Below, piece after piece: positions 444 to 63,535 of a stretch of DNA of 64,000 bases. The position numbers and the translations under genes are program-made. Source of the stretch: Hemiscyllium ocellatum (lineage: Eukaryota); the NCBI RefSeq assembly GCF_020745735.1, contig NC_083442.1, positions 8,682,576-8,746,575 on the forward strand, in the 5' to 3' direction. Position 1 is the stretch's first letter; every line of letters begins with the position of its first letter. The notes below the pieces were generated by a model. That model was not told the origin of the DNA, searched no databases, and was given only the letters and a program-made list of their open reading frames with translations.

Positions 444-749
444 CAGCACATGGCATTTCTTTGCTCATGTGTGACCCACTGTATTGAACTTCACAGTAGA
501 TTTTGCTGGGGCAATTTACCGCTGACCCAGGCAGGGTTAACTGGCTGCTCAGTGTGTAGGTTCCCTTCTTGTTTCTCATTGATCGGTAAGTCTTCAATCC
601 AGTCGTGATCAGCTCCCCACCTTTCTTCCAGGTTACCTTGGTGATGAAAGGGGTATAGTCCATCGCCAAACAACCAAAGACCATAGAATCGGTGTTGTGC
701 TCCCGACAGGAGGAGACCAAGCCATAAAGCGTGGGGGGAGACGGGGTCT
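444..749 (-). CDS. IGHM: Immunoglobulin mu heavy chain constant exon 1 (Cmu1), shark IgM
   Basis: 306-nt exon with acceptor ttctattgtAG (751-750) and donor G|GTAAGT (443-442), phase 1 at both ends. Translates [15 protein letters not shown]...FGCLAMDY...VTWKK...[12 protein letters not shown]...KIYCEV...KEMPCA: a C1-set Ig domain with the shark IgM CH1 signatures SPPTLYGL and NKKGTYTxSSQL. Confidence 0.93.
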
Positions 750-1049: not shown

Positions 1050-1600
1050 CAGATTCATCGAAATTCTACAGTGTGTGCAAACAGGCCATTTGGCCCAACA
1101 AGTCCACACCCACTCTCTGAAAGATAACGCATCCAGACCCATTCCATACCTTAGATTAGATTAATTAGATTACTTACAGTGTGGAAACAGGGCCTTCGGC
1201 CCAACAAGTCCATACCGACCCACTGAAGTGCAACCCACCCAGACCCATTCCCCTTCATTTACCTCAGCCATTTATCCCTTCACCTAACACAACGGGCAAT
1301 TTAGCATGGTCAACTCATCTAACCTGCACATTTTTGGCTTGTAGGAAGAAACCGGAACACCTGGAGGAAACCCACACAGACACAGGGAGAACACTTAACC
1401 CTGACTAATGCACCTAACCTCCCAATCCCTGAACACAACATGGCCAATTCACCCAGCCTGCACATCTTTGGACCGTGGGAACAAACCCATACAGACACGG
1501 GGAGGAAGTGCAAATTCCACACAGACAGTCACCCGAGGCTGGAATCGAACCCAAGTCCCTAGCACTGTGAGGCAGCAATGCTAACCACGGAACCAGTGTG
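1050..1600 (-). mobile_element. Composite of HE1/V-SINE tRNA-derived SINE fragments
   Basis: gattagatta tail, gtggaaacaggcccttcggcccaacaagtcc, V-domain ggaaaccggaacacctggaggaaacccac and tRNA-like head, all in reverse orientation. Confidence 0.8.
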
Positions 1601-2149
1601 CCCCACTAGGCACAGTGCTGCTGGAAATCAGAAACAAAACAGATATTGCTGGAAATTCCCAACGGAGAGAAATCAGAGTGAATCAGGTCCAGTGAGCCTT
1701 CCTCACTTATCAATGCAAGGCAGAATGTTCTCTCTGGGAAGAAGGTCACTGCAGCAGCAGCACAGGCAGGAGCTGAGCACTGGGACGGGGAGGATGGCTG
1801 TCACAGCTGACCTCACACCAACTGTCTGGAAGTTGAAACTTCTAATTTACAGTTATCTGAATTTCGAGGCCTCTGAAAAATGGAGGACCATTAACGTTCA
1901 GAGACTTTGGAGTGTTACACCTGAGTATTTACGTAAATATGATTTGTGAAATGAACAAATACTCTTTAACTTTAATAACTATCAAACTGACACACAGTTC
2001 ACAACCAAACCTCATCTCTCAGACTAACCACTGCACTTACTCTCTGTCTAGACCTAAACTTCCACTCACATTAACAAACCCTACCCTGCTACACACCCAT
2101 TCATGCCCAGAACAAACAACCCCTATCACAAGAAACACATCCAAGGCAA

Positions 2150-2860
2150 TCCATATTGGTAGTGTAGCTGAGCAGAGAGACCTCAGTGTCCATGTAATAG
2201 ATCCCTAAAAGTTGCCAGCCAGTTTGATAGAGTTGTTAATAAGGCATACTTTGTGTTGGCTTTCATTGATAGAGGGACTGAGTTTCAGAACCACGAGGTT
2301 GGGCTGCAGCTGTACAAAACTCTGGTGTGGCTGCATTTGGAGTATTACGTACTGTTCTAGTCATCAAATTCTCGGGAGAATGTGGAAGCTTTGGAAGAGT
2401 TCAGAGGAGGTTTACCAGGATGTTGCTTGGTATGGCGGGACCGTTTTAGGAGGAAAGGATGAGGTTCTTGAGGCTGTTTTTTTTTGAGAGAAGAAGGTTC
2501 AGAGGTGACTTAATTCAGACATAGAAGATAAACAGAGGGTGGACAGTGAAAGTCTTTTTCCTTGGATGGTGATGGCTAGCAGGAGGGGACATAGCTATAA
2601 ATTGAGGGCTGATAGATAGATAGAGGACAAATGTCACAGCTTGTTTCTTTACTCAGAGAGTAGTAGGGGTGTGGAACGCACTGCCCGCAACAATCGGACA
2701 CTCCCAATTTTAAGGGCATTTTAAAGGTTGTTGGATAAACATATGGATGAAAATGGAATAATGCAGGATAAATAGGCTTCAGATTGGTTCCACACGTCAA
2801 TGCAACATTGAGGGTTGAAGGGCTTGTACTGCACTGTAATAGTCTATGTTCTATATTCCA
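2150..2860 (+). mobile_element. CR1 LINE 3' remnant (RT C-terminus and tail)
   Basis: Degenerate LQLYKTLV.PHLEYC..F.S and FTRML motifs followed by the CR1 3' UTR. Confidence 0.75.
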
Positions 2861-3176
2861 GATGGACATATAATCTCAATTCTTTTCACTTATTTCCACT
2901 CCTGCCGCCTTGCACCTGGCCCATGGTGAATCTGGCCCTGACTGGACCTGGCACTGTAATTTGCACAACCGCTGACAGAACGCCACTACCCGAGGCATGA
3001 CCTCAGCCCTTGGTCACTGACGTCTCATGTTACCCAAGTCAACCTGTGCGCATTGTATCCTAGCTCCCTTCGCATCTGTGCTTTACTATCTGCCATTTTC
3101 CAGACTCCGAGCTTTGCATTTTGACATCACGTCCACCTGTCACTTCATGACAGTGACCTTCCACCCCTGAAACATC

Positions 3177-3309
3177 CTGGCATCCTGCCCATCTCTACAC
3201 CAACCAGCCTGGTCCTCTGCCCACTTCTCCACTAACCAACCTGGCATCCTGCCCATCTCTACACTAACCAGCCTGGCACTCTGACCACCTCTCCACAAAC
3301 CAGCCTGGC
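3177..3309. repeat. 32-bp minisatellite, ~4.2 copies, in the JH-Cmu intron
   Basis: Units start at 3177, 3209, 3241 and 3273; consensus ctggcatcctgcccatctctacactaaccagc. Confidence 0.85.
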
Positions 3310-3549
3310 AAAGACAGACCTCCTGCCTTTCAGCCCAAGCTACCCCTCACCGACCAAGCACAATTTGACCAAATTATCATGTGACCATTACCATTTACCT
3401 TGATGCCACCTTGCCAGACAGAGTGCATGCAAGCTTACCCAGCAGCCAGCCAACACCTCACAGCCTACCAGCCCAAACTCTCCCACATTCCAAATCTAGC
3501 CCCTCACTTGCTCACTACCTTCCAACTTTGAGCCTACTCCACCATAAAG

Positions 3550-4135
3550 TCAGTGAGTCATAAAGTCATGTAGCACAGAAACAGTTCCTTTGGTCCAGCT
3601 CATCCATGTTGACCAGCGTTCCCAAATTAAACTAATTCCACTTGCCTGCCTTTGTCCCATATCCATCCAGACCTATCCAGTTCCTGTAGCTGTTCAAACG
3701 TCTTCTAAATGTTGTACCTATCTCTGCATTTACCAGTTCTTCTGGCAGTTCATTCCAATGTTTTGGACAGTTACAGCATGAAGCCCCAACTCTTGCAATC
3801 AATGCTCTGACCAATGAAGGTACATGTGCCAAACACCTTCAACACACCAGCTACTTGAGACAATGCTTTCAAGAATCTATGAGTCTGAACCCTCAGGGCC
3901 CTGTGTTCAACATCACTACCCAGTGCCCTACCATTAACTCTGCAAGTTGTGATCTGATGTATCTTCTCAAAAAGCAACATGTCGTATTAATTTAAATTAA
4001 ACTCAATCTGCCGCTCCTCAGCCCATTGGCCCAGATGATCAAGATCTCATTGTACGTTTAGATAACTTTCACTGCCGATTATACCACCAATTTTGGCGTT
4101 ACGTGCAAACTTACAAACCATGCCCCATACAATGT
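3550..4135 (-). mobile_element. CR1 LINE 3' remnant
   Basis: Reverse complement of the CR1 RT C-terminus and tail with a (gagtcata)n end. Confidence 0.75.
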
Positions 4136-9484: not shown

Positions 9485-9783
9485 AATCAGAATCCAATCA
9501 ACTCAAAACAACAGAATCAAGGAAAATAAAATCAGAATCCAATCAACTCAAAACAACAGATTTAAATGAAGGATAATCAGAATTCAAGTAATTCAATTCA
9601 ACAGAATAAAATAAAACAATTTCAAAAGCCAATCAACGCAATTCAACAAAACCAAGTAAAAACAAAGTCAGAATCCAATCAACACAGTTCAACCGAATCA
9701 ACTAAAGCAAAGCCAAAATCCAATCAACTCAATTCAACAGAATCAAGTAAAACAAACTCAGAATCTAATCAACAGAATGAAAC
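9485..9783. repeat. 45-bp tandem repeat, ~6.6 copies, in the JH-Cmu intron
   Basis: Units at ~9485, 9530, 9575, 9620, 9665, 9710 and 9755; consensus aatcagaatccaatcaactcaattcaacagaatcaagtaaaacaa. Confidence 0.85.
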
Positions 9784-9849
9784 ATAGCACTGCAGGAAAA
9801 TTTTACGACAGTTTGTAACCTGCCGGTCATCAACAAAATTAACGAGAAA

Positions 9850-9939
9850 ATTTTATACTTTACAGAGTAACACATGAGCTGATTCTCAAAATCCCCAACT
9901 GGTGTATCAATAATTATCCACCACGTTTACAAATTAAAT
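9850..9939. repeat. ~90-bp element duplicated on both sides of JH (uninterrupted copy)
   Basis: ttttatactttacagagtaacacatgagctgattctcaaaatccccaactggtgtatcaataattatccaccacgtttacaaattaaat recurs at ~10533-10796, where an insertion splits it. Confidence 0.9.
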
Positions 9940-10311
9940 CATGTTTGGTAATATTTCAAACCTCTTTAAATTCTTAGCTTTTGTTGCTGATAATAAAACT
10001 CACAGTCAGGGTGCCACTGACATTAAACATTATTTATACCTGACTGATTAAGAGACATTAGGTGGTTCAAGTAACCCAGCTACACAGAATTCCCATCTGA
10101 CCCAAAAAAAGAGATACACCAAGCAACTCACTCCATCACCACTATTTTGACTATTTGCAGAGCCTTAACTGAAGTCTATAATCAGTCTGAACAAAAATCA
10201 ATCCGAACCAAACCCAACTCAGCACAGAATCTGAGTTTCATTTAATTCAGAAATTAGTCACATGAATAGAATATTTTTTAAAAAGTCACTAAGAAAGTTC
10301 AAAGTTCTTAC

Positions 10312-10359
10312 CTGAAGTCACTGTCACCATGGTCCCTTGGCCCCAGTAAGCAAGATAGT
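10312..10359 (-). CDS. IGHJ: JH gene segment
   Basis: AC TAT CTT GCT TAC TGG GGC CAA GGG ACC ATG GTG ACA GTG ACT TCA G = YLAYWGQGTMVTVTS with the WGxG motif; donor AG|GTAAGA is phase 1 and matches the Cmu1 acceptor (intron 750-10311). Confidence 0.95.
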
Positions 10360-10398
10360 CACAGTGTTACATTCTCTGGACTGGGTCACACAATAACT
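10360..10398 (+). other. 23-spacer recombination signal sequence of JH
   Basis: CACAGTG (10360-10366), 23-nt spacer (10367-10389), ACAATAACT (10390-10398; 7/9 to ACAAAAACC). Confidence 0.93.
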
Positions 10399-10602
10399 AG
10401 CTCTGCATAAAACAAATAAAAAATCTACCATTATTTTAAATTTTCAGAACCACAGGCAAAATAACGTCACAATAAATCTTCATCACATAATTGTGCTAGT
10501 GAATTCGGATCATTCTCGATAAATTTTAATACTGTTTTATACTTCACAGAGTAACACATGAGCTGATTCTCAAAATCCACAACTGGTGTATCAATAATTA
10601 TC

Positions 10603-10761
10603 GAGTAAAAAGTGAGGTCTGCAGATGCTGGAGATCAGAGCTGAAAATGTATCGCTGGTTAAAGGGTTTCCTGATGAAGGGCTCTGGCCCGAAACGTCGA
10701 ATTTCCTGTTCCTTGGATGCTGCCTGACCTGCTGTGCTTTAACCAGCAACACATTTTCAGC
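10603..10761. mobile_element. 159-bp Penelope-derived insertion in the D-J interval with 14-bp TSD and hammerhead motif
   Basis: Flanked by tatcaataattatc at 10589-10602 and 10762-10775. Internal inverted repeat gctgaaaatgtatcgctggttaaag / ctttaaccagcaacacattttcagc. Same short-element family as the ends of Penelope remnants at 45810-46082 and 49770-51165. Confidence 0.85.
10668..10701 (+). ncRNA. Minimal type-I hammerhead ribozyme motif (Penelope-associated)
   Basis: ttc-CTGATGA-A-GGGC(tctg)GCCC-GAAA-CGTC-gaa: CUGANGA/GAAA core, 4-bp stem II, palindromic ACGU stem III, GUC cleavage triplet, 3-bp stem I. Activity is not shown. Confidence 0.65.
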
Positions 10762-10898
10762 TATCAATAATTATCCACCACGTTTACAAATTAAATAGTG
10801 ATGCTAGCATAAAACCCCACAGAACTAATACTGCAGTGAAAGTTAAGACGGTTGGTAGAAGTAATCACTGACTAGTTTCAAACAATGGAGGCTGAATA

Positions 10899-10926
10899 AG
10901 TTTTTGTATTGATCATAATTGCAGTG
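10899..10926 (-). other. 12-spacer RSS at the 3' side of the fused D (D2-type)
   Basis: Minus strand CACTGCA (10926-10920), ATTATGATCAAT (12 nt), ACAAAAACT (10907-10899; 8/9). The heptamer keeps the essential CAC but is only 4/7 to consensus. Confidence 0.85.
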
Positions 10927-11251
10927 TCACTCCCGTACCCACTGTAGTATCTTGCACAGTAATAGATGGCGGTGTCTTCGATCTTCAGGTTCCCCATGTC
11001 CAACGCGAAAATGTTGTTTAAAGTATCTTTGGACGCAGTAAATCGACCCTTAATCGCTGGTGCATAGCTATTGCTGTTTGATCTATAGTACCAAACCAGC
11101 CACTCCAGACCCTGTCCGGGAACCTGTCGGACCCAGTACATGCCGTAGCTGCTAAGATCGAACCCGCTGGTTTTACAGGTCAGTTTCAGGCTGCCTGCGG
11201 GATGGCCAGTCTCTGCCTCTGGCTGAGTCAAAACAACCTCCGACTGGACAC
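10927..11251 (-). CDS. IGHV: IgM VH exon already fused to D sequence (V-D1-D2)
   Basis: Acceptor ttttcaaAG (11253-11252). Open frame (C)[52 protein letters not shown]...RFTASKD...[17 protein letters not shown]; both Cys and the conserved Trp are intact; no V 23-RSS follows CAR. Confidence 0.93.
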
Positions 11252-11378
11252 CTTTGAAAAGAAAACAAATAAACCATGAGCATTAATACTGATGAAATGA
11301 TGACTGAGTCTGTTACATTCCTGCGGTAAACTAATGTTGAGACAGTAACAAAAAGAGACTTGAACAAAAAACACTCAC

Positions 11379-11427
11379 ATGATAGGAAAGTCAGTAACAA
11401 ACTGAGAAAAAGTGTCGACACAATCAT
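11379..11427 (-). CDS. IGHV: VH leader (signal peptide) exon
   Basis: 49 nt encoding MIVSTLFLSLLLTFLS plus T, donor T|GTGAGT, 127-bp intron; the split codon T|GT gives Cys, then VQS, as in shark VH leaders. Confidence 0.93.
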
Positions 11428-11513
11428 TCCGATAACTTATGGCAAACGGTTCTGTCAAGATCTTTCTAAACAAAGCCGACCCAGGAGTGTTGAATTATGG
11501 TCCAGTGCCCAGG

Positions 11514-11521
11514 ATTTATAT
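11514..11521 (-). promoter_or_regulatory. VH promoter TATA box
   Basis: ATATAAAT on the minus strand, ~87 nt upstream of the leader ATG. Confidence 0.65.
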
Positions 11522-11775
11522 GGCCATCGGAAGGGGCAGGCTTACACCTTCCGCCTGCTGGTTTCCTGCTGGAGATTGAGACTGGACCCTGGTATCAGCT
11601 TGCACAGCCCGAATACATGGGATCATGCCTTTACATGAGGTTATGTTTAAACATGGACATATACACATTTTGGGATATTTGTTTTGCTGGATAGCCTCTT
11701 TGGAAGTAAATTTGAGTAGCTTCAGGTCTGTTTCAGATGATAGTTGCAAATATTTTGTTTAAAAAAACAAAACAA

Positions 11776-12168
11776 ATTCAATTGGAAGTTAGCTCCCTTT
11801 ATTTCTACATTCGAGCTTTTTACCCCTGGACACTGCAAGTCTCTGTCGCATTACAAAATAACCTGTAATCCATACTAAACATTTAAAAATTCAGTTTAGG
11901 CAACTGAATACAGAGCGTGTCCAAAGTGATTATATTTAGAATATTCAATTAGAAGTTAACTCCCTTTAATCCTACATTCAACCACAAGCAGATAAAACTA
12001 AAAAGAACTTCAATAATATTATTAGCCAACAAAATGAGTGACTTTATTTTTGCTGTCACTCAAAGTCTCTCTCACATTACAAAATAAAATATCATTTCTA
12101 ATCTGCGTTTCTAAATTCAATTTCGGCAACCTAATATGGAGCATGGCTGAAGTGATTATGTTCAGAAT
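11776..12168. repeat. Degenerate tandem duplication upstream of the VH promoter
   Basis: 11776-11943 and 11944-12168 share ttcaatt(g/a)gaagtta(g/a)ctcccttta, gtctct..c.cattacaaaata and aagtgatta...agaat; copy 2 has ~55 extra bp. Confidence 0.75.
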
Positions 12169-13317
12169 GTGAGTGTATGTTACTAAACAGTTTGGAGCCG
12201 GAGATTAGAAGCACCTCCTTACATTGCAGAATGTCTCTCCTTGCATCTTTTTATTTCAAATTGCTCCGAACCTAAAATGCATAGTAAAGGAAAGCTGTGT
12301 GCCTGAGAGACAAAAAGTGAGTTGGCAGTGAAACATAACACCTAGGCAAACTTTTGAAAGAGCATCTAATGAACTAGAACAGGACAATCCATAGGTTTTT
12401 TTAAAATCCTCAATATCTAAACCATTGCAGGTAACTGTCTGGGTACATCAGGAGTGTTTGGTTAAATTAGAGAGTACAATAATCATTACCACGAATGTAG
12501 GTCATAAACAGAACATTTCTCTGCTTACTGATAGCTTTGACAGGGGCAGTTAACTCTTAAAAATCAGCAAAAATTCACCCTTAAACTACAGCATTAACCA
12601 TGTATAAAGGGCCCACTCAGTTTTAATGAGATGCATGAATCAGAGAATGTTGCAACAAGTGATGTGAGTTTGAACCAATTCAAGTTTGTTAATTTATTTT
12701 GAGATGATAACAAATGTTACTGCAATGTGGGATTTTGGATCCGTTAACTTCATATTCAGGAGCTTTAAAGATACTCAATAAACAGGCTGAACTAACCAGA
12801 ACGTCAATGTCCTGTTTTCTGATAGTCATACAGTGAATGCTGTATTCAGTGATTTTCCTTTTTAAGGAAGAAATGCCAAGTGAAATGTGTCCATTGTGAG
12901 TAAATGGGAAAATATAGTTTGTTTGGTAGGATTTTACTTTAGTTGATTCATTTTCCCTTTAATCGACCAGATACAATAGTTGGCAGCAATTAAGCTGACT
13001 GCAGAAAAGGTCCTTGAGTTCCCAGTTTCATTTACTGGAAGCAGGTGGTGTTTCTGCAGTGGATCAAAGATATTTTGTCTCACTGTTGACCAGTTGGTGG
13101 AAAGCCAACTGCAAACCATAAACACTGCCTCCACAGAAACAAATCTACTCAGCAACAATGCTGGAGAAAAGTTTATTTTTCAGTTGTGTAACTTGGAGAA
13201 CTAGTCCCTCCTCTCACGGAAGGAAATATTCGCAGAGTCTCAGACACAACCTAAACAACAACAGCTTATTCGAGGAACACTACAGCACTGTTTAATATTG
13301 AGAAAAATTGGTAAATA

Positions 13318-16269: not shown

Positions 16270-17345
16270 TTTATTGGAAATGAACAGAGTATGACCACCA
16301 ATATGTTCTTGGTGGAGTGGGAGAGGGAGTTAAAGTGTTCAGCCATGGGGCCGTGGGGTTGTTTGGCACGGGTGACCCAGAGATGTTCTCTGAAATGATC
16401 CACAAGTTAGTGTCCTGTCTCCCTGATGTAGAGGAGACCACATCAGGTGGAACAGACACAGTCGATGACATTTGTTGAAGTACAGATAAATTTCTGTGGG
16501 ATGTGGAAGGATCATTTGGGCCTTGTCGGAGGTGAGGGGGAAGGTGTGGGCGAAGGTTTTGCACTTCCTGTGGTGGCAGGGGAAGGTGACAGGGTGTGGA
16601 GTGGGTGTACCTGACGAGGGAGTCGCAGAGGGAATGGTGTCTCCGGAATGCAGATAGGGGTAGGAAGGAAAATATACCCCGAGTGATGGGGTCTGCTTGC
16701 AAGTGATGGAAGCAGCGGAGGATATGATATATGCGAGGTTGATGCAGTGGAAGATGAGGACCAGTAGGGCTCCCTGTTGCGATTGTAGGGGTGGGGGTTC
16801 AAGGGCATCATCGACCAAGTAGGAGGGGGAAATTGCAGTCTTGGGGCTGTTTTATGGTGGAACTGGTCCTCCTGGGAGCAGATGCAGTGGAGGCTGAGGT
16901 ATTGAGAATAAGGGATGGCATTTTTACAGGAGGTCGGGTGGGAGGAGGTGTAGTCCAGGTAGCTGTGAGAGTCAGTGGGCTTGCAGTAAATGTTTAGTTG
17001 GTCACTGGAGATAGAGGTGGAGAGGTCTAAGAAAGGGAGGGAGGTGTCCGAGATATTCCCTGTGAAGTTTAGGTCAGGGTGGAAGGTTTTAGTGAAGTTG
17101 ATGAATTGTTCAACCTCCTAGTGGTATCATGAAGTGGCGTTGGTACAGTCATCAATATAGCAGTGGTAAAGGTGGGCAATGATACCGGTGTAGCTGTGGA
17201 AGATTGACTGTTCCACACACCTGACGAAGAGTCAGGCATAGCTGGCGTCCATACAGGTGTCCACGGCTACCCCTTTGGTTTGGAGAAAGTGGGAGGATTG
17301 GAACGAAATGGACTTGTGAGTTGAGCAGTTCAGCCAAGCGAATGA
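16270..17345 (-). mobile_element. Penelope-like retroelement remnant (RT and GIY-YIG)
   Basis: FLQTKGVAVDTCMDASYA resembles the Penelope RT motif QxxGxAMGx; DPITRGIF...LSAFRR..SLCDSLVR; CHHRKCKT zinc motif. Confidence 0.8.
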
Positions 17346-24099: not shown

Positions 24100-27000
24100 A
24101 GAGCAAATGTCAATGATAGGGAACCAGAAGCAGCCTGTTCAGCCAATGGAGTTTGGTCTTCCAAACAATCACATCATAGCTGAACTGATAATCCTCACCT
24201 CCACTTTCCAGCATTTTAACTGTAAGCATTGATTCAATTACCAAATCAAAACCTGTCCATTTCAGCCTTCAAAGTATGAATGACCCAACCTCAATAGTCT
24301 TCTATGGTAGAGAATTCCACAGATTCACTACATTCTGAGAGACAAAATTCTCTTCTGCCTGAAATTTGTGATCTCTAATTCAGGGATTCTACTCCCTGGT
24401 CTGAAACTCTCCCACGAGGGGAAACAACATTTCTGCATTTACACCATCAAGTTTCCAGAAAATAATAGATGTTTCAGAATGTCAGTCCTGAATCTTCTAT
24501 GTTCTAATGTGTATAGGCCCAAACGACTCAATCTCTACTGTCAAGACAGCCCCTCCATCCTCAGGATCAGTCGACTGAACCTCATGTGGATTGTCTCACA
24601 TTCCAGTGTACCTTTTCTTTATTTGAGCGCCAAGAACAGTTCACAGTATTCCAGCTGAGGTAAGAATAGAGCTTCTTTTCAGTTTTAACAAACATTATAA
24701 TCATACAGACATCCAGCACAGAAACAGACCTCTCCATCCAACTGCACTCACCAGATATCCCAATCTGACTGAGTACCATTTGCCAAACATTTGGCCCATC
24801 TTCCTCTGAATGTTACCTGTTCAAACACCGATCCAGGTGCCTTTTAAATGCAGTAATTGAACCTGCCTCCACCACTACCGCTGGCAGCTTTTTCCATTCA
24901 CTCACGCGAAAAGGTTACCCCTCAGGTTCTTTTCAAACGTTTCTCCTCTCACTTTAATCCGCTGTCCTCTAGTTTTGGACTCTCCCACTTGAGGAAAAAG
25001 GCCTTGGCCATTCACCATATCAATGCCCTGCATGATTTTATAGGTCTTGTTCAGGCCACTCCTTAACCTCCTTTCCTCTCACTGCAGGGAAAAGAAAAGC
25101 CCCAGCATATTCAGCCTCACCTTATACCTTAAACACTCCAGTTCCAGCATCATTCTTGGAAATCTTTTCTACATCTTCTCAAGTTTCGCAAAATCCCTGA
25201 TAGAAATGGTCAGCCAGATTTGTCTGTAATAATTCTAAACATGGCCTCATAAATATTCTGTACAGTTGAGACATGGCATCTCGACTCCTACGCTTAATGT
25301 TCTGACCAATGAAGGAAAGCGTGCCAAACACCTCCTTCCCCACCCTGTATACCTGCAACTCCACTTTAAGGAATGATGCATCTGCACCCTTTGGTTTCTT
25401 TGCTCAGCAACACTCCCCAAGGCCCAGCCATTAATTGTATAAGTCCTGCCCTGGTTTGCCTTACAAAAATGCAACACCTCACATTTATTTAATGAAGCAT
25501 GGGTTCATGAATGGCCAGTTATGTTTAACTGATTTATTGGAATTCTTTGAGGTCATAATGACCGTGGTAGACAATGGGGAACTGGTGAACGTGGTGTATC
25601 TGGATTTCCAAAAGGCATTCAGCAAGGTGCTGCACAAAAGGCTGCTGCATAAGATAAAGATGCACAGTGTTACAGGCAATGCATTAGCATGGAGAGAAGA
25701 TTGGTTAACTAACAGAATGCAAAACATGTTTTTCTGGTTGGCAATCAGTGGCTAGTGGTGTGATTCAGGGATCAGTGTTGAGACTGGCAATTGTTTACAA
25801 TTGTTGGGACTGCAATTGTTTACAATTCAGGTAGATTGCTTAGAGTTAGAGACCAAGTGTAGTGTGTTCGCAGAAGACACTTAAATGACTGATAGAGCAA
25901 ACTGTGCAGAAGGATATAGACAGGCTAAGTGAGTGGGCAAGGGTCTGGCAGATGGAGTATAATGTTAGTAAACATTAGGTCATCCATTTTGGTAGGAATA
26001 ATAGCAAAGTGGACTATTATAAAATGGTGAAAAATTACAGAATGCTGCTGTGCAGGGGGACCTGGGTGTTCTTGTGCATGAAACACAAAAGTGGGGTTTG
26101 CAAGCACAGTAGCTAATTAGGAAGACAAATGGAATAGTGTCCTTCACTGGCAGTGGATAGAGTTTAAAATTAGGACTTTCTGCTGCAGCTGTATAGGGCG
26201 CTGGTGTGGCCACGCCTGGAGTACTCTGTACATTTTTCATCACCTTACATGAGATGGCAGTGGGGTGGGGTTTACTGAGGAGGTTAACCATGTTGATTCT
26301 GGAAATGAGGCGGTTGGCTTATGAGGAGAGATTGAGCAGATTGGGATTATACTCATTGGAATTCAGAAGAATGGGGGAGGGGGATTGTAAAATTATAAAT
26401 GGGATAGGTAAGACAGAAGCAGGGAGGCTGCTTCCACTGGTAGATGAAATTAGAACTACAGGGCATAGCCTCAAAATAAGGGCAGCAGATTTCAGACTGT
26501 GTTGAGGATGAACATCTTCACCCAAAGGGTTGTGAATCTGTGGAATTCCCTGCCCAGTGAAGCAGCTGAGGCTAAGCTGTTGAATGTTTTAAAGGTGAAA
26601 ATAGATTTATGAACAATCAAGGAATGAAGGGGTATAGTGAGCGGGTGGGTATGTGGAGCCACAGTCCATTGAAAGATGATCCATGATGTTATTGAAAAGC
26701 AGAACAGACTCATGGGGTTAGATGTCCTTCTCCTGATCGTATTTCTTATGTTTGGATGTTGCTATGTTCTAACAGGCCTCCAATCTGAAAAGTAATGCTC
26801 TCTGACTACTAAATCAAAACTGAAAGAACTGTGGATGCTGTGTATCAGAAACAAAAATAGAAACTGCTGGAAATGCTCAGAAGGTCTGGCAGCATCTCTG
26901 GAGAGAAAGGCTCACCAGTTTATGGTTCCCTGGCTTTTCCATACAGCTTTCTTCAATAATGCTGCCACAATAGTCGCTCTCCAGTCTTCTGGCATCTCAC

Positions 27001-28490
27001 CTATGATCATCAATGATACAAATATCTCAGCAAGGGGTCCAGGAATTTCTTCCCTAACTTCCCACAAAGCTCTGGGAAATACCTAATCAGGTCTTTGGGA
27101 TTTATTTCCATTCTTCTGCTTTAAGACCTCCAACGCCTCCTCTTCTATAAGATGAACTCTTTTAAAGATCTTATTATTTATTTCCCAAGTTCCTTAGCTT
27201 CCATGCTCCTGTCTACTGTAAATATTGATGCAAAATATTTCCTTCGTGTCTCAGCCATCTCGTGTGTTTCCACACATAGAAAGCCATGTTGATCTTTAAG
27301 GGGCTGAATTCTCTCCTTAGTTATTCTTTTAACCTTAACATAATTTTAGAATCTTTTTGGATTCTCCTTAATTCTATTTGCCAATGCAATTTCATGTCCC
27401 CCTTTTGTCCTCATGATTTCCTGTTTAAGTATACTTCTACTGCCCTTATACCCTTCTCAGGATTCACTCGATCCCAGCATATCTGATGTATGTCCCGTTC
27501 ATTTTCTGGACAGGAGTATCAATTTTCCATGTCATTGAGCTTTACCCATGCCTTTCCCTTCACACAAATGGGAACATACCATCACTGAACTCTCACTGTC
27601 TCATTCCTAAAGGCCTCCCACTTGTCAACCGCCCCTTTACCTGTGAATAGCCTCCCCCAACCAACTTCTCAAAGTCTAATACCATCAAAATTGGCCACAC
27701 TCCAATTTGGAAGATTCATTTTTTAATCAATTCTATCCTTTCTCGTCATTATTATAAAACCAATATAATTATGATCACTTTCTCTGAAGTGTGCCCCTAT
27801 GGACACCTCAGTCACTTGCCATGCCTTGGTTCCCAACAGAAGGTCAAGTATTGCACACTGTCTAGTAGGTGCATCCACTGATTGAATAACAAAGTTTTTT
27901 GGTACACACTTAACCAATTTCTCCCCATTCCAAGATCTTAACACTATCCCAAACTCTGTTTGAGATGTTAAAATTCCCTACCATCGTTCTTTTTTCTTAC
28001 CGATAGCTGAGACCTCCTTTCATATTCGCTTGTGAATTTCCTACTGACAATTAGGAATCCTATTTTACAACCACCTCTTTCTTATTTTTAAGTTTCATCC
28101 ATATAACTTCACTGGGCAGTCTCCAAGGAATATCCTCTCTACATCCAGCCATAATGTTCTGACTAACCAAAAGCACCACTCCTCCTCCTCTCTTGCTTCC
28201 CTGCCCATACATTCTATCATATTTATATCCTGGAACATTAAGCTGCCAGTCCTGTTCATCCCTGAGCCACATTTCTGTAATGGTAATGATATCCTTGTCC
28301 CACATTCCCATGCATGCCCTGTATTCATCTGTCTCACATGTCAGGCCTCTTGCATCGAAGTAAATGCAGCTTAACAGACTTACCTTGCTCTTACCAAACT
28401 GTTATCTGCCTTGACTCTTAGAATTGCTCGCCTCACCTCACCTCAAATGTCTCTTTTCTCACTATCTTGTTGGTTACCACCACCTCCCTT
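24100..28490. mobile_element. Cluster of CR1 remnants in alternating orientation (~24100-25500 minus, ~25480-26760 plus, ~26915-28490 minus)
   Basis: HGF..G..CLT.LLEFFE...VYLDFQKAF.KV.H.RLL.K (plus); APE-domain D.I.ITE.WL..EQDW.LN.PGY and LDLLLG (minus). Confidence 0.8.
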
Positions 28491-37733: not shown

Positions 37734-38690
37734 GAGTCATAGAGATGTACAGCATGAAAACTGACCCTTCTGTCCAACCCATCCATACTAACCAGATATC
37801 CCAACCCAAACTAGTCCCAGCTGACAGCGCCCGGCCCATAACCCTCCAAACCCTTCCTATTTATATACTCATCCAGATGCCTTTTAAATGTTGCAATTAT
37901 ACCAATCTCCACCACTTCCTCTGGCAGCTCATTCCATACACGTACTACCCTCTGTGTGAAAAGGTTGCCCCTTAGGTCTCGTTTGTATCTTTCCCCTCTC
38001 ACCTTCAAACCTATGCCCTCTAGTTCTGGACTCCCCGATCCCAGGGAAAAGACTTTGTCTATTTATCCTATCAATGCCCCTCATGATTTTGTAAACCTCT
38101 ATAACGTCATCCCTCAACCACGAAGCTCCAGAAAAACAGCCTCAGCCTGTTCAGCCTTTCCCCATAGCTCAAATCCTCCAATCCTGGCAACATCCTTGTA
38201 AATCTTTTCTGAATATTTTCAAGTTTCACAACATCTTTCTGATAGGAAGGAGACCAGAATTGTACACAATATTCCAACAGTGGCCTAACCATTGTCCTGT
38301 ACAGCCGCAACATAACTTCCCAAATCCTGTACTCAATACTCTGACCAATAAAAGAAAGCATACCAAACACCTTTTTCATGATCCTATCTACCTGTTACTC
38401 CACTTTCAAGGAGCTGTGAACCTGCACTCCAAAGTCTCTTTGTTCAGTAACACTCCCTTGGACCTTATCATTAAGTGTACAAGTCCTGCTAAGATTTGCT
38501 TTCCCAGAATGCAGCACCTCGCATTTATCTGAATTAAACTCCATCTGCCACATCTCAGCGCATTGGTCCATCTGGTCAAGATCCTATTGTAATCTGAGGT
38601 AACCCTCTTCGCTGTCCACTATACCTCCAAATTTGGTGTCATCTGCAAACTAACTAACTGTACCTCTTATGCTCGCATCTGAATCATTGA
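37734..38690 (-). mobile_element. CR1 insertion splitting the Gypsy RT
   Basis: RT motif aaagtcat|gc is interrupted; insert has a catagagt tail and LRLYRTMVRPLLEYCVQFWSP on the minus strand. Confidence 0.85.
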
Positions 38691-39174
38691 AGTCATGCAA
38701 TTTGGTTTGGAAAATGCGGCAGCCACATTTGAAAGACTAACCAATAAAGTAATTTCTGGGTTATCCAATTGTATGGTGTACATCGACAACCTTGTGATCT
38801 TTTAGTCACACATGGAAGGAACATGTGCAGCATTTATTGGAACTATTTTACTGACTTTGGGAGACAGGCTGGTGATAAACCTGGCTAAGTGTGGATTCGC
38901 CAAAGTCCGAGTCATGTCCCTGGCCAAGTTGTCAGGCATGGATAGATGGCCCCGACCATAACATTGACAAAGACAGGAGGACTATGATTCCTGGGAGTGA
39001 ATGGGTTTACCAGAAGTTTGCACCAAATTGTAGCAATGTGGTTGCTCCACTGACTGACTAATTGAAGAATTGCCGGATATTTTAGTGGACAGTAGAAGGT
39101 CAGGAGGCATTTGACAACCTGAAAGCTGTGTTAGCCATTGCCCCAGTGTTAGCTATGCCTAATTACACAAAACT

Positions 39175-40650
39175 ACTCAGCTCCTGACCTCATTAGAGCC
39201 TTGATCCACATACGGACAAAACAGCTGAATGCTTGAGGTAAGGGGAGAGTGACAGTCCTTAGCATCAAGGCTACATTCGATTGAATGTGGCTTCAAGGAG
39301 CCCTAGGAAAACTGGAATCAATGCATATTGGTTGCAAACTCTCCGACGGTTGGAGTCATACCTGACAATAGGAAGATGGTTGTGGTTGTTAGAGGTTAGT
39401 CACCTCAGGTCCAAGAGTCTCTTAGGTGAGTGTCCTCACCCCAACCATCTTCAATTGCTTCATCAATGCCCTTCCCCTCCATCAGAAAGGGGGATGTTCG
39501 CTGATGATTGCACTATGTTCAGCGCCATTCACGACTACTCAGATACTGGTGTCGTCCATATTCAAATGCTACAAGATTTAGACAATATCCAGGTATGGGC
39601 TGACAAATGGCAAGTAACATTGGTGCCACACAAATGCCAGGCTATTACCATAAAAAAAGACAATCCAACCACCGCCCCTTGGCATTCAATGGTATTACCA
39701 TCACTGAATCCCATAATATCAACATCCTGGGGGTAATCATTGACCAGAAACTCAACTGCACTTACCACAAACACAGCTACAAGAGCAGGTCAGAAGCTAG
39801 AAATACTGCAGCGAGTAATACTGCAGCCAGTCCACCATCTACAATGCACAAGTCGGAAGTGTGATGGAATACTCCCAACTTGCCTGGATGGGTGCAGCCC
39901 CATCAACACTCAAGAAGCTTGACACCATCCAGGACAAAGCAGCCCACTTGATTGGCACCACATCCACAAGCGTCTACTTCCTCCACCACACATACTCAGT
40001 GCACACTGCTGTTGCTACTATCTACAAGATGCACTGCAGAAATTTTCAAAAGATCCTCAGACAGCACCTTCCAAACTCACAACCACTTCCATCTAGAAGG
40101 ACAAGGGCATCAGATATATGGGAACTCCACCACCTCCAGTTCCCTTCCAAGTCAGTGACACAGTGGTCAGCACTGCTGCCTCACAGCGCCAGAGACCCTG
40201 GTTCAATTCCCGTCTCAGGCAACTGTGTGTGGAGTTTGCACATTCCCCCCATGTCTGTTTGGGTTTCCTCCGGGTGCTCCGGTTTCCTCCAACAGTCCAA
40301 AAACGTGCAGGTTAGGTGAATTGGCCATGCTAAATTGCCCGTAGTGTTAGGTGAAGGGGTAAATGTAGAGGAATGGGTCAGGGTGGGTTGCTCTTCAGAG
40401 GGTTGGTGTGGACTTGTTGGGCCGAAGGGCCTGTTTCCACACTAAGGAATCTAATCTAAAAAAAAGTCATGCACTATCCTGACTTGGAAATATATCGCCT
40501 TCACTTTTGCTGGGTCAAAGTCCTGGAATTCCCTCCCTAATGGCATTGGGAGTTAACAGCAGGTGGACCACAGCAGTTCAAGAAGGCAGCTCATCACCAC
40601 CTTCTCAAGGGCAATAAATGCTGGCCAGCTAGCGACACCCACAACCCATA
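39175..40650 (+). mobile_element. CR1/L2-group LINE 3' part with nested V-SINE
   Basis: MFADDCTMF...WADKWQVT RT motifs; SINE at 40155-40463 is flanked by a 6-bp TSD aagtca. Confidence 0.8.
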
Positions 40651-41330: not shown

Positions 41331-44130
41331 CTTATTTACCCTAACTGTGCCCCTCATGATTTTACAAACCTTTATAAGGTCACCCCTCAGCTACCAACGC
41401 TCCAAGGAAACCAGCCACAGCTTCTTCGGTCTCTCCTTGTCGCTCAAACCCTCCAACCCTGGCAACATCCTTGTAAATCTATTCCGAACCCTTTCAAGTT
41501 TCGCAACAGCCTTCCTTTAGGAGGGAGACCAGCATTGCATGCAATATTCCAAAGGTGGTCTAACCAGTGCCCTGTATAGCCGCAACATGACCTCCTAACT
41601 CCTATACTCAATGCTCTGACCAATAAATGCAAGCATACTCAATCCCTCTTCACTATCCTGTCTTCCTGAGACTCCACTTCCAAGGAACTGTAAACCTGCA
41701 CTCCAAGGTCTCTGATCAACAACATTCCCCAGGACCATACCATGAAGTGCGTAAGTCCAACCCTGCTTTGCGTTTCCAAAATGCAGCACCTTGCATTTAT
41801 CTAAACTGAACTCCATCGACCAACCTTTGGTCCATCTGATCAAGATCCTGTTGTACTCTGCGGTAACCTTCTTCGCTGTCCACCACACCTACAATTTTGG
41901 TATCTTCTGCAAATTTGTTGCATATACCTTCTATGTTCACATCCAAATCTTACATATAAATGATAAAAAGCAGCAAACCCAGCACCGATCCTTGTGGCAC
42001 TCCACTGGACACAGACCTCCAGTCTGAAAAACACCCTCCACCATCACCCTCTGTCTTCTGCCTTCAAGCCAGTTCTGCATCCAAGTGGCTAGTTTTCCCT
42101 GTATACCATGAAATCTAACCTTGCTAACCAGTCTCCCATGAGTAACTTTGTTGAATGCCATACTTAGGTTCATATAAATCACATCCATTGCTCTGCCTCA
42201 CTCATTCTCTTCGTTACTTATTCAAGAAACTCAATCAAGTTTGTGAGACATGATTTGCCACGCATAAAGCAATGCTGACTATCCCTAATCAGTCTTCGCC
42301 TTTCCAAATACATGTATATCCTGCCCCTCAGGATTCCCTCCAACTGCAACATGCCCACCAATCATGTCAGGCTCACTGGGCTATAGTTCTCTGGCTTTCC
42401 ATACCACCTTTCTTAAACAGTGGCACCATGTTAGCCAACCTGCTGTCTTCCAGCATCTCACCTGTGACTATCGATGATACAAATATCTCAGCAATGGGCC
42501 CAGCAATCACTTCCCGAGCTTCCTCCAGAGTTCCAAGGGTACACCGTGTCAGGTCCTGAGGATTTAAGACATCCAGCACCTCCTGCTCTGTAATCTGGAC
42601 ATTTTTGAAGATGTCACTATCTATTTCCCCACATTCTATATCTTCCATGTCCTTCTCCAAAGTAAACATTGATGCAAATATTCCTTTAGTATCTGCCCCA
42701 TCTCTTGCGGTTCGACACATTGGCTGCCTTGCTGATCCTTGAAGGGCCCTATTGTCTCCTTAGTTACCCCTTTATCCTTAATGTATTTGGAGAATCATTT
42801 TGGATTCTCCTTAACCCCGTTTTTGCCTTCTTGATTTCCCTGTTAAGTATACTCCTACTTCCTTTATACTCTAAGGATTCACTCGATCTATTCTGTCTAT
42901 ACCTGTAATATGCTTCCTTCTTTTTCTTGACCAAACCTTCAACTTCTCTAGGTATCCAGCATTCCTCACATCTACCAGCCTTGCCTTTCACCCCAACAGG
43001 GTGAAACCCCACACTATCTCATTATCTCATTTTTGAAGGCTTCTCATTTTCCAGCCATCACTTTACCTGCAAACATCCGCACCCAATTACCTTTTCAAAG
43101 TTTTTGCCTAACACTGACAAAATTGTCCTTTATCCAATTTAGAATTTTAACAGTTAGATCCTGGCTATCCTTTTCCATCACTATTTTAAAACGAATAGAA
43201 TTATGGTTGCCGGCCCCAAAGTGCTCCCCCACTGAAAGCTCACTCACCTGCCCTGCCTTATTTCCCAAGAGTAGGTCAAGTTTTGCACCTTCTGTAGGAG
43301 ATACATCCACATACTGAATCAGAAATTTTTCTTGTACACACTTAACAAATTCCTCTCTATCTAAACCCTTAACACTATGCCAGTCCCAGTCTACAGTTAG
43401 AAATTTAAAATCCCCTAACATAACCACCCTATTATTCTTACAGATAACTGAGATCTCCTAACAAATTTGTTTCTCAATTTCCTGCTGACTATGTGGAGCT
43501 CTATAGTACAATCCCAAAAAGGTAATAATCCTCTTATTTCTTACTTCCACCCAAATGACTTCCCGGATGTATCCCAGGAATATCCTCCCTCAGTACAGCT
43601 GTAATGCTATCTCTTAACAAAAATGGCACACCGGCTCCTGTCTTGCTTCCCTTTCTATCCTTCCTGTTGCATTTGTATCCGGGAACATTAAACTACCCAT
43701 CCCTGAGCCATGATTCTGTAATTGCTCTGATATCCCAGTCCCATGTTCCTAACCATGCCCTGAGTTCATCTGCCTTCCCTGTTAGGCCTCTTGCATTGAA
43801 GTAAATGCAGGTTGACTTATCAGTCCTACCTTGTTCGCTGCTTTGTCCCGGCCTGCCCTGACTCTTCCCAACTGTACCAGTCTCAGATTAATCTCTTTCA
43901 TCACTATCCCCCGGGTCCTACCACCACCCTCCCCTCCCCCACCCCCACCACCTCCCCAACTTGGTACTTTCAATCCTCCCAAGCAGCTGCAGCAATCTCC
44001 CTGCCAGTATATTAGTCCCCTTCCAATTCAGGTGCAATACATCCTTCTTGTATAGGTCACTTCGACCAGAGAAGAGCTTCCAATTATCTAAAATGTGAAT
44101 CCTTCTCCCATACACCAGCTCCACAGCTAC
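41330..44130 (-). mobile_element. Long CR1 remnant (APE endonuclease and RT)
   Basis: ORF 43095-43427 GDF....DWD...LDLLLGN...NHNSI.F; DVIYMNLSMAFNKVTHGRL.SK RT motif. Confidence 0.85.
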
Positions 44131-44935
44131 ACGTTCATCTTGGACACTGCCCTTCCTCCCCTTCCTGGACCTCTCCATCTCCATCAACAGCGACCGACTC
44201 AACACTGACATTTTCTACAAACCCACCTGCTCCCACAGCTAAACAAAGACAGAACCCCCTGGTCTTCACCTTCCATCCCACCAACCTCCAGATACATTTC
44301 ATCATCCTCTGCCATTTCCGCCCTACAATGGACCCGAGAACCAGAGATATATTTCCCTCCACATGCTTGTCTGCTTTCTGTAAAGATCATTTCCTCCACA
44401 ACTCCCTTGTCAGGTCCACACCCCACCAACCCACCAACGCACCAACCCACCCTCCCCTCTCGGCACCTTACTCTGCCACTGTAGGAATAGCAATACCTGT
44501 CCCACAATTCCCTCTCACTTCCGTCAAATGCCCCGAAGTAGCTTTGCACATCCATCAGAGCTTTAGCTGCACTTCCACACGTCATTTACTGTATCAGTTG
44601 CTCCCCATGCAGTCACCTCTACATCAGGGATACAGGATGCCTACTTACTGAGCGCTTCAGAGAACATCTCCAGGACACCCGGACCAACCAACCCCCCTCC
44701 CCCGCCCCCCCCAAACGTGTGGCTGAAAACCTCACCTCCCCCTCTCATTCTGCTGAGGACATGCAGGTCCTGGGCCTCCTCTATCATGAGGTCAGTGCCG
44801 GTTTGGAAGGTTGGGGCTGGGTTTGGGAGGAGAGGAGAAGTGAGGAAACTGGTGAAATCCACATTGATAGCGTGTGTTTGCAGTGTCCCAAGGCAGAATG
44901 TGAGGCGTTCTTTCTCCAGGCCTTGGGTGGTTAGG
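44130..44935 (+). mobile_element. Penelope-like remnant
   Basis: DPRTRDIFPSTCLSAFCKDHFL.NSLVRS, homologous to ORF 50418-50978. Confidence 0.8.
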
Positions 44936-45240
44936 GTCTCACCAGCTATTCATTAAGATACTGAAACTTGACTGTCCTCCAGTCCATTTCTGGAGTTCTT
45001 ACTCTCTGAACCTTTAACCTTCAGGAGGGCTGGCGGTGAAATGCCACAGTGGGGGTGAACCCTTCAAAAAGAATCTAACTTGCATCAGAGATGTTAAAAT
45101 GGCTCAAGGTATCTAATACAAAGCTAATTTATTTGACTTTTAACCAAAATATCAAACCTGTCTCACACAGATTAATTAACCTGAGCAGAAACAGACTCAG
45201 TGAACATGGCTTGGGCCTGGATGTGGTGAACAGCACAATC

Positions 45241-49769: not shown

Positions 49770-51165
49770 GTAAAAACAATGACTGCAGATGCTGGAAACC
49801 AGATTCTGGATTAATGGTGCTGGAAAAGCAGAGCAGTTTAGGCAGCATCCGAGGAGCAGTAAAATTGACGTTTCGGGCAAAAGCCCTTCATCAGGAATAC
49901 TGGCAGAGTGCCTGAAAGGTGGAAAGATAAATGAGAGGAGGGTGGGGGTGGGGAGAAAGTAGCATAGCGTACAGTAGGTGAGTGGGGGAAGGGAAGAAGG
50001 TGATAGGTCAGGGAGGAAGGTGGGGGAAGGTAGCAAAGAGTACAATGTGTGGATAGGGGTGGGATGAAGGTGATAGGTCAGGGAGGAAGGTAGAGTGGAT
50101 AGGTGGTAAAGAAAATAGGCAGGTAGGACAAGTCATGGGGACAGTGCTGAGCTGGAAGTTTGGAACTGGGGTGAGGTGGGGGAAGGGGAAATGAGGAAAC
50201 TGTTGAAGTCCAAATTGATGCCCTGGGGTTGAAGTGTTCCGAGGCTGAAGATGAGGCATTCTTCCTCCAGGTGTTGGGTGGTGAGGGAGCGGCGGTGAAG
50301 GAGGCCCAGGACCTCCATGTCCTCAGCAGAGTGGGAGGAGGTGTTGAAATGTTGGGCCACAAGGGCGGTGTGGTTGATTGGTGTCGGTGTCCCAGAGATG
50401 TTCCCTAAAGCACTCTGCTAGGAGGCGTTCAGTCTCCCCAATGTAGAGGAGACTGCATCGGGAGCAATGGATACAATAAATGATATTGGTGGCTTTGCAG
50501 GTAAAACTTTGATGGATGTGGAAGGCTCCTTAGGGCCTTGGATGGAGGTGAGGGAGGAGGTGTGGGCGGAGGTTTTGCAATTCCTGCGGTGGCAGGGGAA
50601 GGTGCCAGGAAGGGAGTGTGGATTGTTGTGGGGTGTGGACCTGACCAGGTAGTCACGGAGGGAACGGTCTTTGTGGAAGGCGGAAAGGGGTGGGGAGAGA
50701 AATATATCCCTGGTGGTGGGGTCCGTTTGGAGGTGGCGAAAATGTTGACGGATGATTTGATTTATGCGAAGGTTGGTAGGGTGGAAGGTGAGCACCAGGG
50801 GCGTTCTACCCTTGTTACGGTTGGAGGGTTGGGGTCTGAGGGCGGAGATGTGGGACGTGGACGAGATGCATTGGAAGGCATCTTTAACCATGTGGGAAGG
50901 GAAATTGCGGTCTCTGAAGAAGGAGGCCATCTGGTGTGTTCTGTGGTTGAACTGGTCCTCCTGGAGTAGATACGGCATAGGAATTGGGAATACAGGATGG
51001 CATTTTTGCAGGAGGTAGGGTGGGAAGAGGCGTAATCTAGGTAGCTGTGGGAGTCAGTGGGTTTGTAAAAAATGTCGGTGTCAAGTCAGTCGTCATTAAT
51101 GGAGATGGAGTGGTCCAGGAAGGAGAGGGAGGTGTCAGAGATGGTCCAAGTAAATTTAAGGTCAG
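49770..51165 (-). mobile_element. Penelope-like element 3' half with GIY-YIG region and hammerhead-bearing terminus
   Basis: ORF 50418-50978 RTPLVLTFHP...QTDPTTRDIF...FPCHRRNCKT; core CTGATGA-A-GGGC(tttt)GCCC-GAAA-CGTC on the minus strand at 49865-49898. Confidence 0.85.
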
Positions 51166-60400: not shown

Positions 60401-60609
60401 TGAGGGTCAGTCAGTACTGAGGGAGTGCTGCATTGTCAGAGGGTCAATACTGAATGAGCACGACACTGTCAGAGGTTCACTACTGAGGGAGCGTTGCACT
60501 GTCAATGGGTCAGTATGAGGGAGTGCTGCATTGTCAGAGGGTCAGTACTGAGGGAGCACAACACTGTTAGAGGATCATAACTGAGACAGCGCTACAGTGT
60601 GAATGGGTT

Positions 60610-60917
60610 TGATTAGATTAGATTACTTACAGTGTGGAAACAGGCCCTTCGGCCCAACCAGTCCACACCGACCCGCCGAAGCGCAACCCACCCATTCCCC
60701 TACATTTACCTCTTATCTAACACTATGGGCAATTTAGTATGGCCAATTCACCTGACCTGCACATCTTTGGACTGTGGGAGGAAACCGGAGTACCCGGAGG
60801 AAACCCACGCAGACACGGGGAAAATGTGCAAACTCCACACAGTCAGTCGCCTGAGTCGGGAATTGAACCCGGGTCTCTGGTGCTGTGAGGCAGCAGTGCT
60901 AACCACTGTGCCACCGT
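60610..60917 (-). mobile_element. HE1/V-SINE inserted in the satellite
   Basis: Near-consensus reverse-complement copy with a gattagattagatta tail. Confidence 0.9.
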
Positions 60918-63269: not shown

Positions 63270-63535
63270 TTAGATTAGATTACTTGTCGGCCCAACATGT
63301 CCACATACCCCTACATTTACCCCTTACCTAACACTACATGCAATTTAGCATGGCCAATTCACCTGACCCGCTCATCTTTGGACTGTGGGAGGAAACCGGA
63401 GCACCTGGAGGAAACCCACGCAGACACGGGGAGAACGTGCAAACACCACACAGTCTTTCGCCTGAGTCAGGAATTGAACCCGGGTCTCAGGCGCTGTGAG
63501 GCAGCAGTGCTAACCACCGTGCCACCGTGCCGCCC
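63270..63535 (-). mobile_element. HE1/V-SINE inserted in the satellite
   Basis: Ends ccgtgccgccc; agtt on both flanks; an empty-site paralog lies at ~61765. Confidence 0.9.

Follow-up and report, generated by a model that had tools for sequence, protein, structure and literature searches.

The stretch analysed here (the window) comprises 64,000 nucleotides of Hemiscyllium ocellatum DNA (NCBI RefSeq assembly GCF_020745735.1, contig NC_083442.1, positions 8,682,576 to 8,746,575 of the forward strand). On its minus strand we confirmed a cluster-type immunoglobulin M (IgM) heavy-chain minilocus of cartilaginous-fish type, in which the variable (V) segment and two diversity (D) segments are fused and the joining (J) segment stands apart, a layout denoted VDD-J. 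An earlier note, made from the letters of the sequence, had claimed that the heavy-chain V (VH) frame ending in YYCAR runs straight into YYSGYGS, and direct reading bore this out: a 24-nucleotide (nt) D stretch adjoins TGTGCAAG directly, keeps its frame and contains no stop codon. When the interval 10300-11000 was scanned leniently for recombination signal sequences (RSSs), only a 12-RSS behind the D stretch and the 23-RSS of J were detected. As the note had stated, a V 23-RSS and any V-D or D-D spacer were missing from that interval; a D1 RSS and a D2 5' RSS were missing as well.

The remaining parts of the cluster were found as described earlier: leader, splice sites, TATA-like element, both V cysteines and J are all intact. 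The VH exon possesses the two cysteines, the tryptophan and the YYC motif and matches Pfam V-set at 1.5e-15. Its leader is identical to that of the Chiloscyllium punctatum protein P0001, and its translation is most similar to C. punctatum chiPu_0018445 (91% amino acid identity), followed by VH sequences of other bamboo shark, catshark, whale shark and horn shark (76% for the horn shark entry HV01_HETFR). On the same strand, within about 1-2 kb of V, lies a single JH that encodes a WGxG motif and is flanked by a 23-RSS and followed by a splice donor. The 12-RSS after D and the 23-RSS flanking JH are where the note had placed them; however, the 12-RSS heptamer, CACTGCA, agrees with the consensus at only four of seven positions, with CAC kept, while its nonamer agrees at eight of nine. 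The distance between D2 and J, given earlier as ~550 bp, measured 500 bp from RSS to RSS, a 159-bp repeat insert included. The TATA-like element probably has a promoter role, and an octamer-like ATGTAAAG, matching ATGCAAAT at six of eight positions, lies ~120 bp farther 5'. As for Cmu1, the note was right that it is intact, but the exon lies 9.6 kb downstream, outside the interval that the note had covered; it is 63% identical to CH1 of a Mustelus asterias VDJ-CH1 model. Judging from the VH family and the layout, the isotype is probably mu rather than IgW. Six-frame open reading frame (ORF) and RSS scans revealed no second Ig cluster or split paralog in the window.

The V-D1-D2 junction was decomposed by comparison with four loci, L001 to L004, of the C. 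punctatum assembly GCA_003427335.1, of which L001 served as the split reference for D1 and L004 for D2. In both of these split clusters V ends with TGTGCAAGAGAC and is followed by a 23-RSS. The split D1 of L001, at 10912-10925, is flanked by a 12-RSS and a 23-RSS, whereas the split D2 of L004, ATATAACTGGGGTGA, lies between two 12-RSSs, the 3' signal being CACTGCA, 12 nt and ACAAAAACC. Measured against these references, the VH 3' end in the window is 3-4 nt shorter, D1 has lost nothing at either end, and D2 lacks 5 nt at its 5' end (coding-end losses at V, D1 5', D1 3' and D2 5' of 3-4, 0, 0 and 5 nt). No nontemplated (N) nucleotides are required at either joint. The D2 remnant matches the last 10 nt of the L004 D2 at 8 of 10 positions, and the D2 part of L003 equally well. 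Two intervals are missing from the window, namely the spacer that begins with the V heptamer and ends with the 5' heptamer of D1 (428 bp in L001) and the one that begins with the 3' heptamer of D1 and ends with the 5' heptamer of D2 (356 bp in L004). BLAST of these excised L001 and L004 spacers against the whole 64 kb returned chance matches of 11-24 nt only; since the spacers are present nowhere else in the window, there is no sign of their reinsertion. The feature coordinates are listed in Table 1.

Table 1. Parts of the VDD-J cluster, in window coordinates
Feature	Coordinates	Strand	Remarks
TATA-like putative promoter element CCATATAAATCC	11512-11523	-	~90 bp 5' of the ATG; invariant in 4 aligned related clusters
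Leader exon 1, MIVSTLFLSLLLTFLS plus 1 nt	11379-11427	-	ATG at 11427; GT donor at 11378-11377
Leader intron, 127 bp, GT...AG	11252-11378	-	Direct reading
VH exon up to ...YYCA(R)	10951-11251	-	Reads VQS/EVVLTQ...MYWVRQ...DTAIYYCAR
D1, complete, ATACTACAGTGGGT	10937-10950	-	Fused directly to V, no RSS; 14/14 to the split D1 of L001
D2 remnant ACGGGAGTGA	10927-10936	-	Fused to D1; abuts a D2-type 3' RSS; first 5 nt missing
D2 3' 12-RSS: CACTGCA, 12-nt spacer, ACAAAAACT	10899-10926	-	27/28 to the split L004 D2 3' RSS
D2-J interval, 500 bp RSS to RSS	10399-10898	-	Would be deleted by the final recombination
JH 23-RSS, gene strand: nonamer AGTTATTGT, 23-nt spacer, heptamer CACTGTG	10360-10398	-	Heptamer perfect; nonamer 7/9
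JH segment, ..YLAYWGQGTMVTVTS	10312-10359	-	Phase-1 GT donor at 10311-10310
CH1-type (Cmu1-like) exon, 306 nt, phase 1-1	444-749	-	AG acceptor and GT donor intact; C1-set 1.4e-11

As judged from sequence comparison, chance is excluded as the source of the fused layout, because a 14-nt D1 identical to the split D1 of the relative stands at the joint and because the borders of the missing DNA coincide exactly with RSSs. The 12-RSS of D2 and the 23-RSS of J are retained in deletional (convergent) orientation. The D1 and D2 matches, together with these retained signals, bear out the claim that V, D1 and D2 are fused and that one join allowed by the 12/23 rule is left. The RSS-bounded missing intervals also support what had been proposed about origin, and the junction bears the footprint expected of two RAG-type deletional joins. 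We considered whether a single D could suffice, either because V had joined straight to D2, the V 23-RSS being a legal partner of the D2 5' 12-RSS, or because N nucleotides had been added in a one-D cluster. This has next to no chance of being correct: the first 14 nt after V are the exact, full-length split D1 of L001, and the presence of a full D1 excludes both versions. Two further candidates were rejected. The unit is not a processed (cDNA-derived) copy, since the leader intron is retained, as are the promoter and >20 kb of collinear flanks, and misassembly by repeat collapse is discounted because the joined ends share no repeat.

Over >20 kb the window and L001 align collinearly at 91-95% identity, the exact exception being the V-D-D region. 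The fused layout itself recurs in C. punctatum: L002 contains two head-to-head VDD-J clusters (L002+ and L002-) and L003 contains one, each with V fused to D, followed by a 12-RSS and J. The V frames of L002+ and L003 are open. Within L002 (BEZZ01001741.1) the two clusters, at 1400-3900 on the minus strand and 10800-12500 on the plus strand, are ~7 kb apart. L002- has decayed into a pseudogene: its leader and framework region 1 (FR1) contain stops, its D remnant measures 7 nt and its heptamers are degraded (CACGGCA at the 12-RSS, CAATGTG at J). What the window shares with these clusters is the VDD-J layout, and the D2 3' heptamer CACTGCA is common to the window, L002+, L003 and the split L004. 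It differs from all three in the sequence and length of its junction and in its branch of the tree described below; the four junctions differ in length and in the V and D1 nucleotides that survive. No published description of L002+, L002- or L003 as VDD-J clusters was found in the literature searched.

Both split references carry defects of their own. L004 (BEZZ01002017.1, 10380-11640) is a complete split V-D1-D2-J cluster and a pseudogene: its FR3 is frameshifted, its V heptamer has mutated to CGCAGCG, and compared with the window its promoter has an 82-bp deletion. In L001 (BEZZ01001580.1), D2 is truncated at 11283-11310: an AGCT microhomology links ATATAGCTG directly to the distal part of the D2-J interval, with loss of the D2 3' end, the 12-RSS behind it and ~190 bp. 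The loss would reflect a disabling deletion in the germ line or else an error of short-read assembly.

Next comes the question of whether the joint is inherited. Among the two-step intermediates of nurse shark thymocytes VDD-J is the most frequent, and B cells have it as well (Malecek et al. 2008, PMC2435157); these somatic intermediates have the identical configuration, with both signals and the D2-J interval kept; such loci can be transcribed (PMC2435157). The assembly might accordingly have caught the junction of a lymphocyte or thymocyte clone at a locus that is truly split. Somatic shark junctions, however, are typically trimmed, supplied with N or palindromic (P) additions and individually unique (PMC2435157), whereas the window joint needs no N, stands in the assembly consensus, which would not take up the junction of one rare clone, and has inherited counterparts in a relative. 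Those counterparts are the three C. punctatum loci with VDD, a 12-RSS and a 23-RSS-flanked J, one of them (L002-) old enough to have decayed. According to PMC7471279, that assembly was made from liver DNA, so that the VDD-J layout is an inherited one in this lineage. We infer that the join is germline in this animal because no N is needed, because three joined loci occur in a liver-derived assembly of a relative, and because a clone is unlikely to surface as consensus; a somatic origin is very improbable.

To place the join in time, a maximum-likelihood tree was calculated from 2.4 kb spanning promoter to V, the distal D-J interval, J and the J-C intron, with the junction left out. The window was sister to the split L001 (100/98), followed by the split L004 (93/90), and the L002 pair (98/97) and L003 fell outside this group. 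In approximately unbiased (AU) tests, a single clade of all joined clusters was rejected (p 0.011), and so was a grouping of the window with the L002 pair (p 0.002). Since its nearest relative is split, the join in the window is derived, in line with the earlier proposal. A completed join is irreversible. Together with the split sister, this points to a separate event, younger than the ~6.7% divergence from L001. These data support the VDD join as a probably independent RAG-type event that left a 12/23-compatible locus.

An alternative is that gene conversion or unequal crossing-over brought the junction in from a VDD-J paralog of greater age in the same genome, without a new RAG event. IgM clusters are multicopy and alike, the lineage contains further VDD-J clusters, gene conversion has been reported for shark Ig-superfamily domains (PMC12227049), and the basis for this genome is one cluster read. 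Against import, D2 and the proximal D2-J interval are 90.8% identical to the split L004, much like the flanks (about 91%), but only about 85% and 78% identical to the L002 and L003 types; D1 matches the sister L001 at 14 of 14 positions, and the junction is unlike all three known VDD-J junctions. We therefore consider import improbable and retain an independent join. At least two separate germ-cell RAG events would be supported by the loci compared here.

If so, the proposed course of events is as follows. Two RAG-type deletional joins in the germ line of an ancestor would have fused V to D1 and D1 to D2. In a B-cell precursor, RAG would then pair the D2 3' 12-RSS with the J 23-RSS, as the 12/23 rule allows, the 500-bp interval with its repeat insert would be deleted, and a single coding joint would complete the VDDJ exon. 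The start of complementarity-determining region 3 (CDR3) would be largely fixed as AR-YYSGYG, with diversity generated only at the D2-J joint. Two nucleotides are left after the last full D2 codon and two precede the first full J codon, so a flush D2-J joint would be out of frame; ordinary joint processing would bring about one in three joints into frame. Transcription would start from the conserved V promoter, and J would be spliced to Cmu1.

Overall, the favoured explanation is a VDD-J minilocus formed by two germ-line RAG-type deletional joins in an ancestor, to which we assign a probability of about 0.8; taken by itself, the structure with a RAG-type, inherited origin is very probable. Actual use of the locus for antibody production is a narrower claim, for which we would give slightly better than even odds. 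The ratio of nonsynonymous to synonymous substitution (dN/dS) in the V exon is 0.43 for the window versus L001 and 0.23 for L002+ versus L003, and values below 1 may hint at continued use.

Several points weigh against this explanation or parts of it. An earlier alignment of 1.5 kb, to which 0.9 kb of J-C intron was later added to give the 2.4 kb, did not reject descent of the joined clusters from one origin (AU p 0.07); the hypotheses for the AU tests were drawn up once the first tree had been seen, and gene conversion between clusters could blur the tree. When the exact ATG-to-stop ORF across the joint was looked up in public assemblies, including Logan, no record was returned. The CH1-type exon is the only constant-region exon in the window; Cmu2-4, the secretory tail and the transmembrane exons would fall beyond the window start. 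The split references contain no demonstrably functional cluster bearing the D2 3' RSS, since L004 is a pseudogene and L001 lacks the signal, and the 12-RSS heptamer departs from the consensus as noted above. Finally, as PMC2193156 relates, expression of the joined heavy-chain genes of horn shark was not detected.

Some of these points favour the view that the join is inherited but the cluster an unused relic, never or almost never completed or expressed because of the weak 12-RSS or of defective downstream exons or regulation. The heptamer, the constant exons lying beyond the window after Cmu1 and the horn shark genes not found expressed (PMC2193156) all fit it. So does the state of the five related C. 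punctatum clusters: two of them, L002- and L004, are pseudogenes and a third, L001, carries a truncated D2, so that decay is common in this family of clusters. Yet leader, splice sites, V, J and Cmu1 of the window are all open and canonical, the TATA region is invariant and dN/dS of V is below 1. The CAC of the heptamer and eight of nine nonamer positions, the positions most important for cleavage, are kept, and the RSS as a whole is conserved among clusters that are 15-20% divergent elsewhere. A relic is therefore unlikely in our view, though it deserves to be kept in mind, and we return to a locus that may be in use. The weak heptamer may also explain, as a speculation, why germline events, like those in thymocytes (PMC2435157), would tend to halt at VDD-J.

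Side observations were made on the D2-J interval and the J-Cmu intron. The insert in the former is a dispersed repeat of 159 bp (10603-10761) that L001, L002 and L004 lack. Perfect target-site duplications of 14 bp flank it (10589-10602 and 10762-10775), with the plus-strand sequence TATCAATAATTATC. The repeat includes a 26-nt inverted repeat (10639-10664 and 10737-10762), and its core occurs eight times in the window. An Rfam scan of 9500-12000 with E up to 0.01 gave no match. At 9851-9939 the J-Cmu intron carries 89 bp that reproduce the "empty" D2-J site at 97-100% identity. This copy corresponds to 10535-10602 plus 10762-10796, has one copy of the target-site duplication and replaces ~95 bp present in L001 and L002. 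As this copy is devoid of the insert, a local copying or patch repair event predates the repeat insertion.

A protein search with Cmu1 returned a sole match, P0092, a 132-amino-acid "hypothetical protein" on a 480-bp contig filed under Salmonella enterica that is 67% identical to the CH1 exon of the window; a length filter had kept out full-length mu chains. P0092 is almost certainly vertebrate contamination in the Salmonella assembly. Upstream of the Ig cluster, the greater part of the window is taken up by open frames resembling fragments of reverse transcriptase or of long interspersed nuclear elements (16270-17120, 25250-26500, 28060-28400, 38100-39900, 41600-43460, 44000-45000 and 50400-51100), and no second Ig or T-cell receptor segment was seen there. 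About 8 kb at 56090-63990 consist of satellite DNA that has a 33-bp unit, shows periods of 66, 99 and 132 at higher order, with matches of 64-70%, and yields long spurious open frames on both strands.

Shark heavy-chain clusters that are partly or fully joined form a class known since the 1980s, first from horn shark, and the window cluster adds a member to it that leaves the known picture unchanged. Heavy-chain clusters with VD-J, VDD and VDJ germline joins are well established in cartilaginous fish (PMC2193156, PMC4279169, PMC5192425). Reviews describe partly (VD-J, VD-DJ) and fully (VDJ) germline-joined clusters that arise via RAG in germ cells (PMC4279169, PMC5192425, PMC6795676), an ascription also made for joined heavy-chain genes in PMC2193156, where Lee et al. 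name VD and VDD joined horn shark genes explicitly. Heterodontus francisci, with VD-J, VDD-J and VDJ clusters, resembles the present case in its cluster-type heavy-chain locus, in V fused to D with the remaining RSSs kept, in an origin ascribed to germ-cell RAG and in the mixture of split and joined clusters in one genome (PMC2193156, PMC4279169, PMC5192425). It belongs to another shark order, whereas the relatives of the window cluster are hemiscylliid, and its genes are too divergent for the junction to be reconstructed (PMC2193156), whereas the window has a split sister at about 93-95% identity that permits this.

Closer in taxonomy is IgM1gj of nurse shark, a fully VDJ germline-joined, neonatal gene that lacks Cmu2 (PMC4279169, PMC5192425). 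Like the window cluster, it is a joined heavy-chain V region of an orectolobiform shark with a predetermined CDR3, and an early-life role has been proposed for it; it needs no recombination, whereas the window cluster still needs its D2-J join and so keeps junctional diversity. Apart from IgM1gj, nurse shark is reported to have no canonical joined IgM (PMC5192425). The joined NS4 light-chain genes of the same species (Lee et al. 2000, PMC2193156) nest among close split genes, imply several independent germline RAG events and keep their regulatory motifs. They differ in being one-step VJ joins of a light chain, whereas the window shows two successive heavy-chain joins with a third still open. 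In bamboo sharks, 37 IgM clusters have been counted in C. plagiosum, and an IgNAR with pre-joined D segments is known (PMC8692893); no account of joined IgM clusters in these sharks was found in PMC8692893 and the literature searched, a weak negative given their partial coverage.

Taken together, what the window adds to this class is that both D footprints are identified, that a split sister represents the "before" state and allows a reconstruction at the level of the junction, and that there is evidence for VDD-J having arisen more than once in one shark family. It is tempting, though doubtful at present, to suppose that hemiscylliids have repeatedly fixed VDD-J clusters by separate RAG events, without TdT since the joints need no N, with D2-to-J as a step perhaps slowed by the conserved heptamer CACTGCA, and that the resulting one-step clusters have been kept by selection because they supply a fast, semi-invariant IgM repertoire in early life. 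If the reading of two germ-line joins holds, the window and its split sister would form a clean before-and-after pair for heavy-chain germline rearrangement, and the CDR3 signature ARYYSGYG would offer a concrete handle for repertoire studies. The locus bears on two long-standing questions: does RAG work in germ cells and remodel antigen-receptor loci, and do pre-assembled receptors provide an early repertoire of innate-like character?

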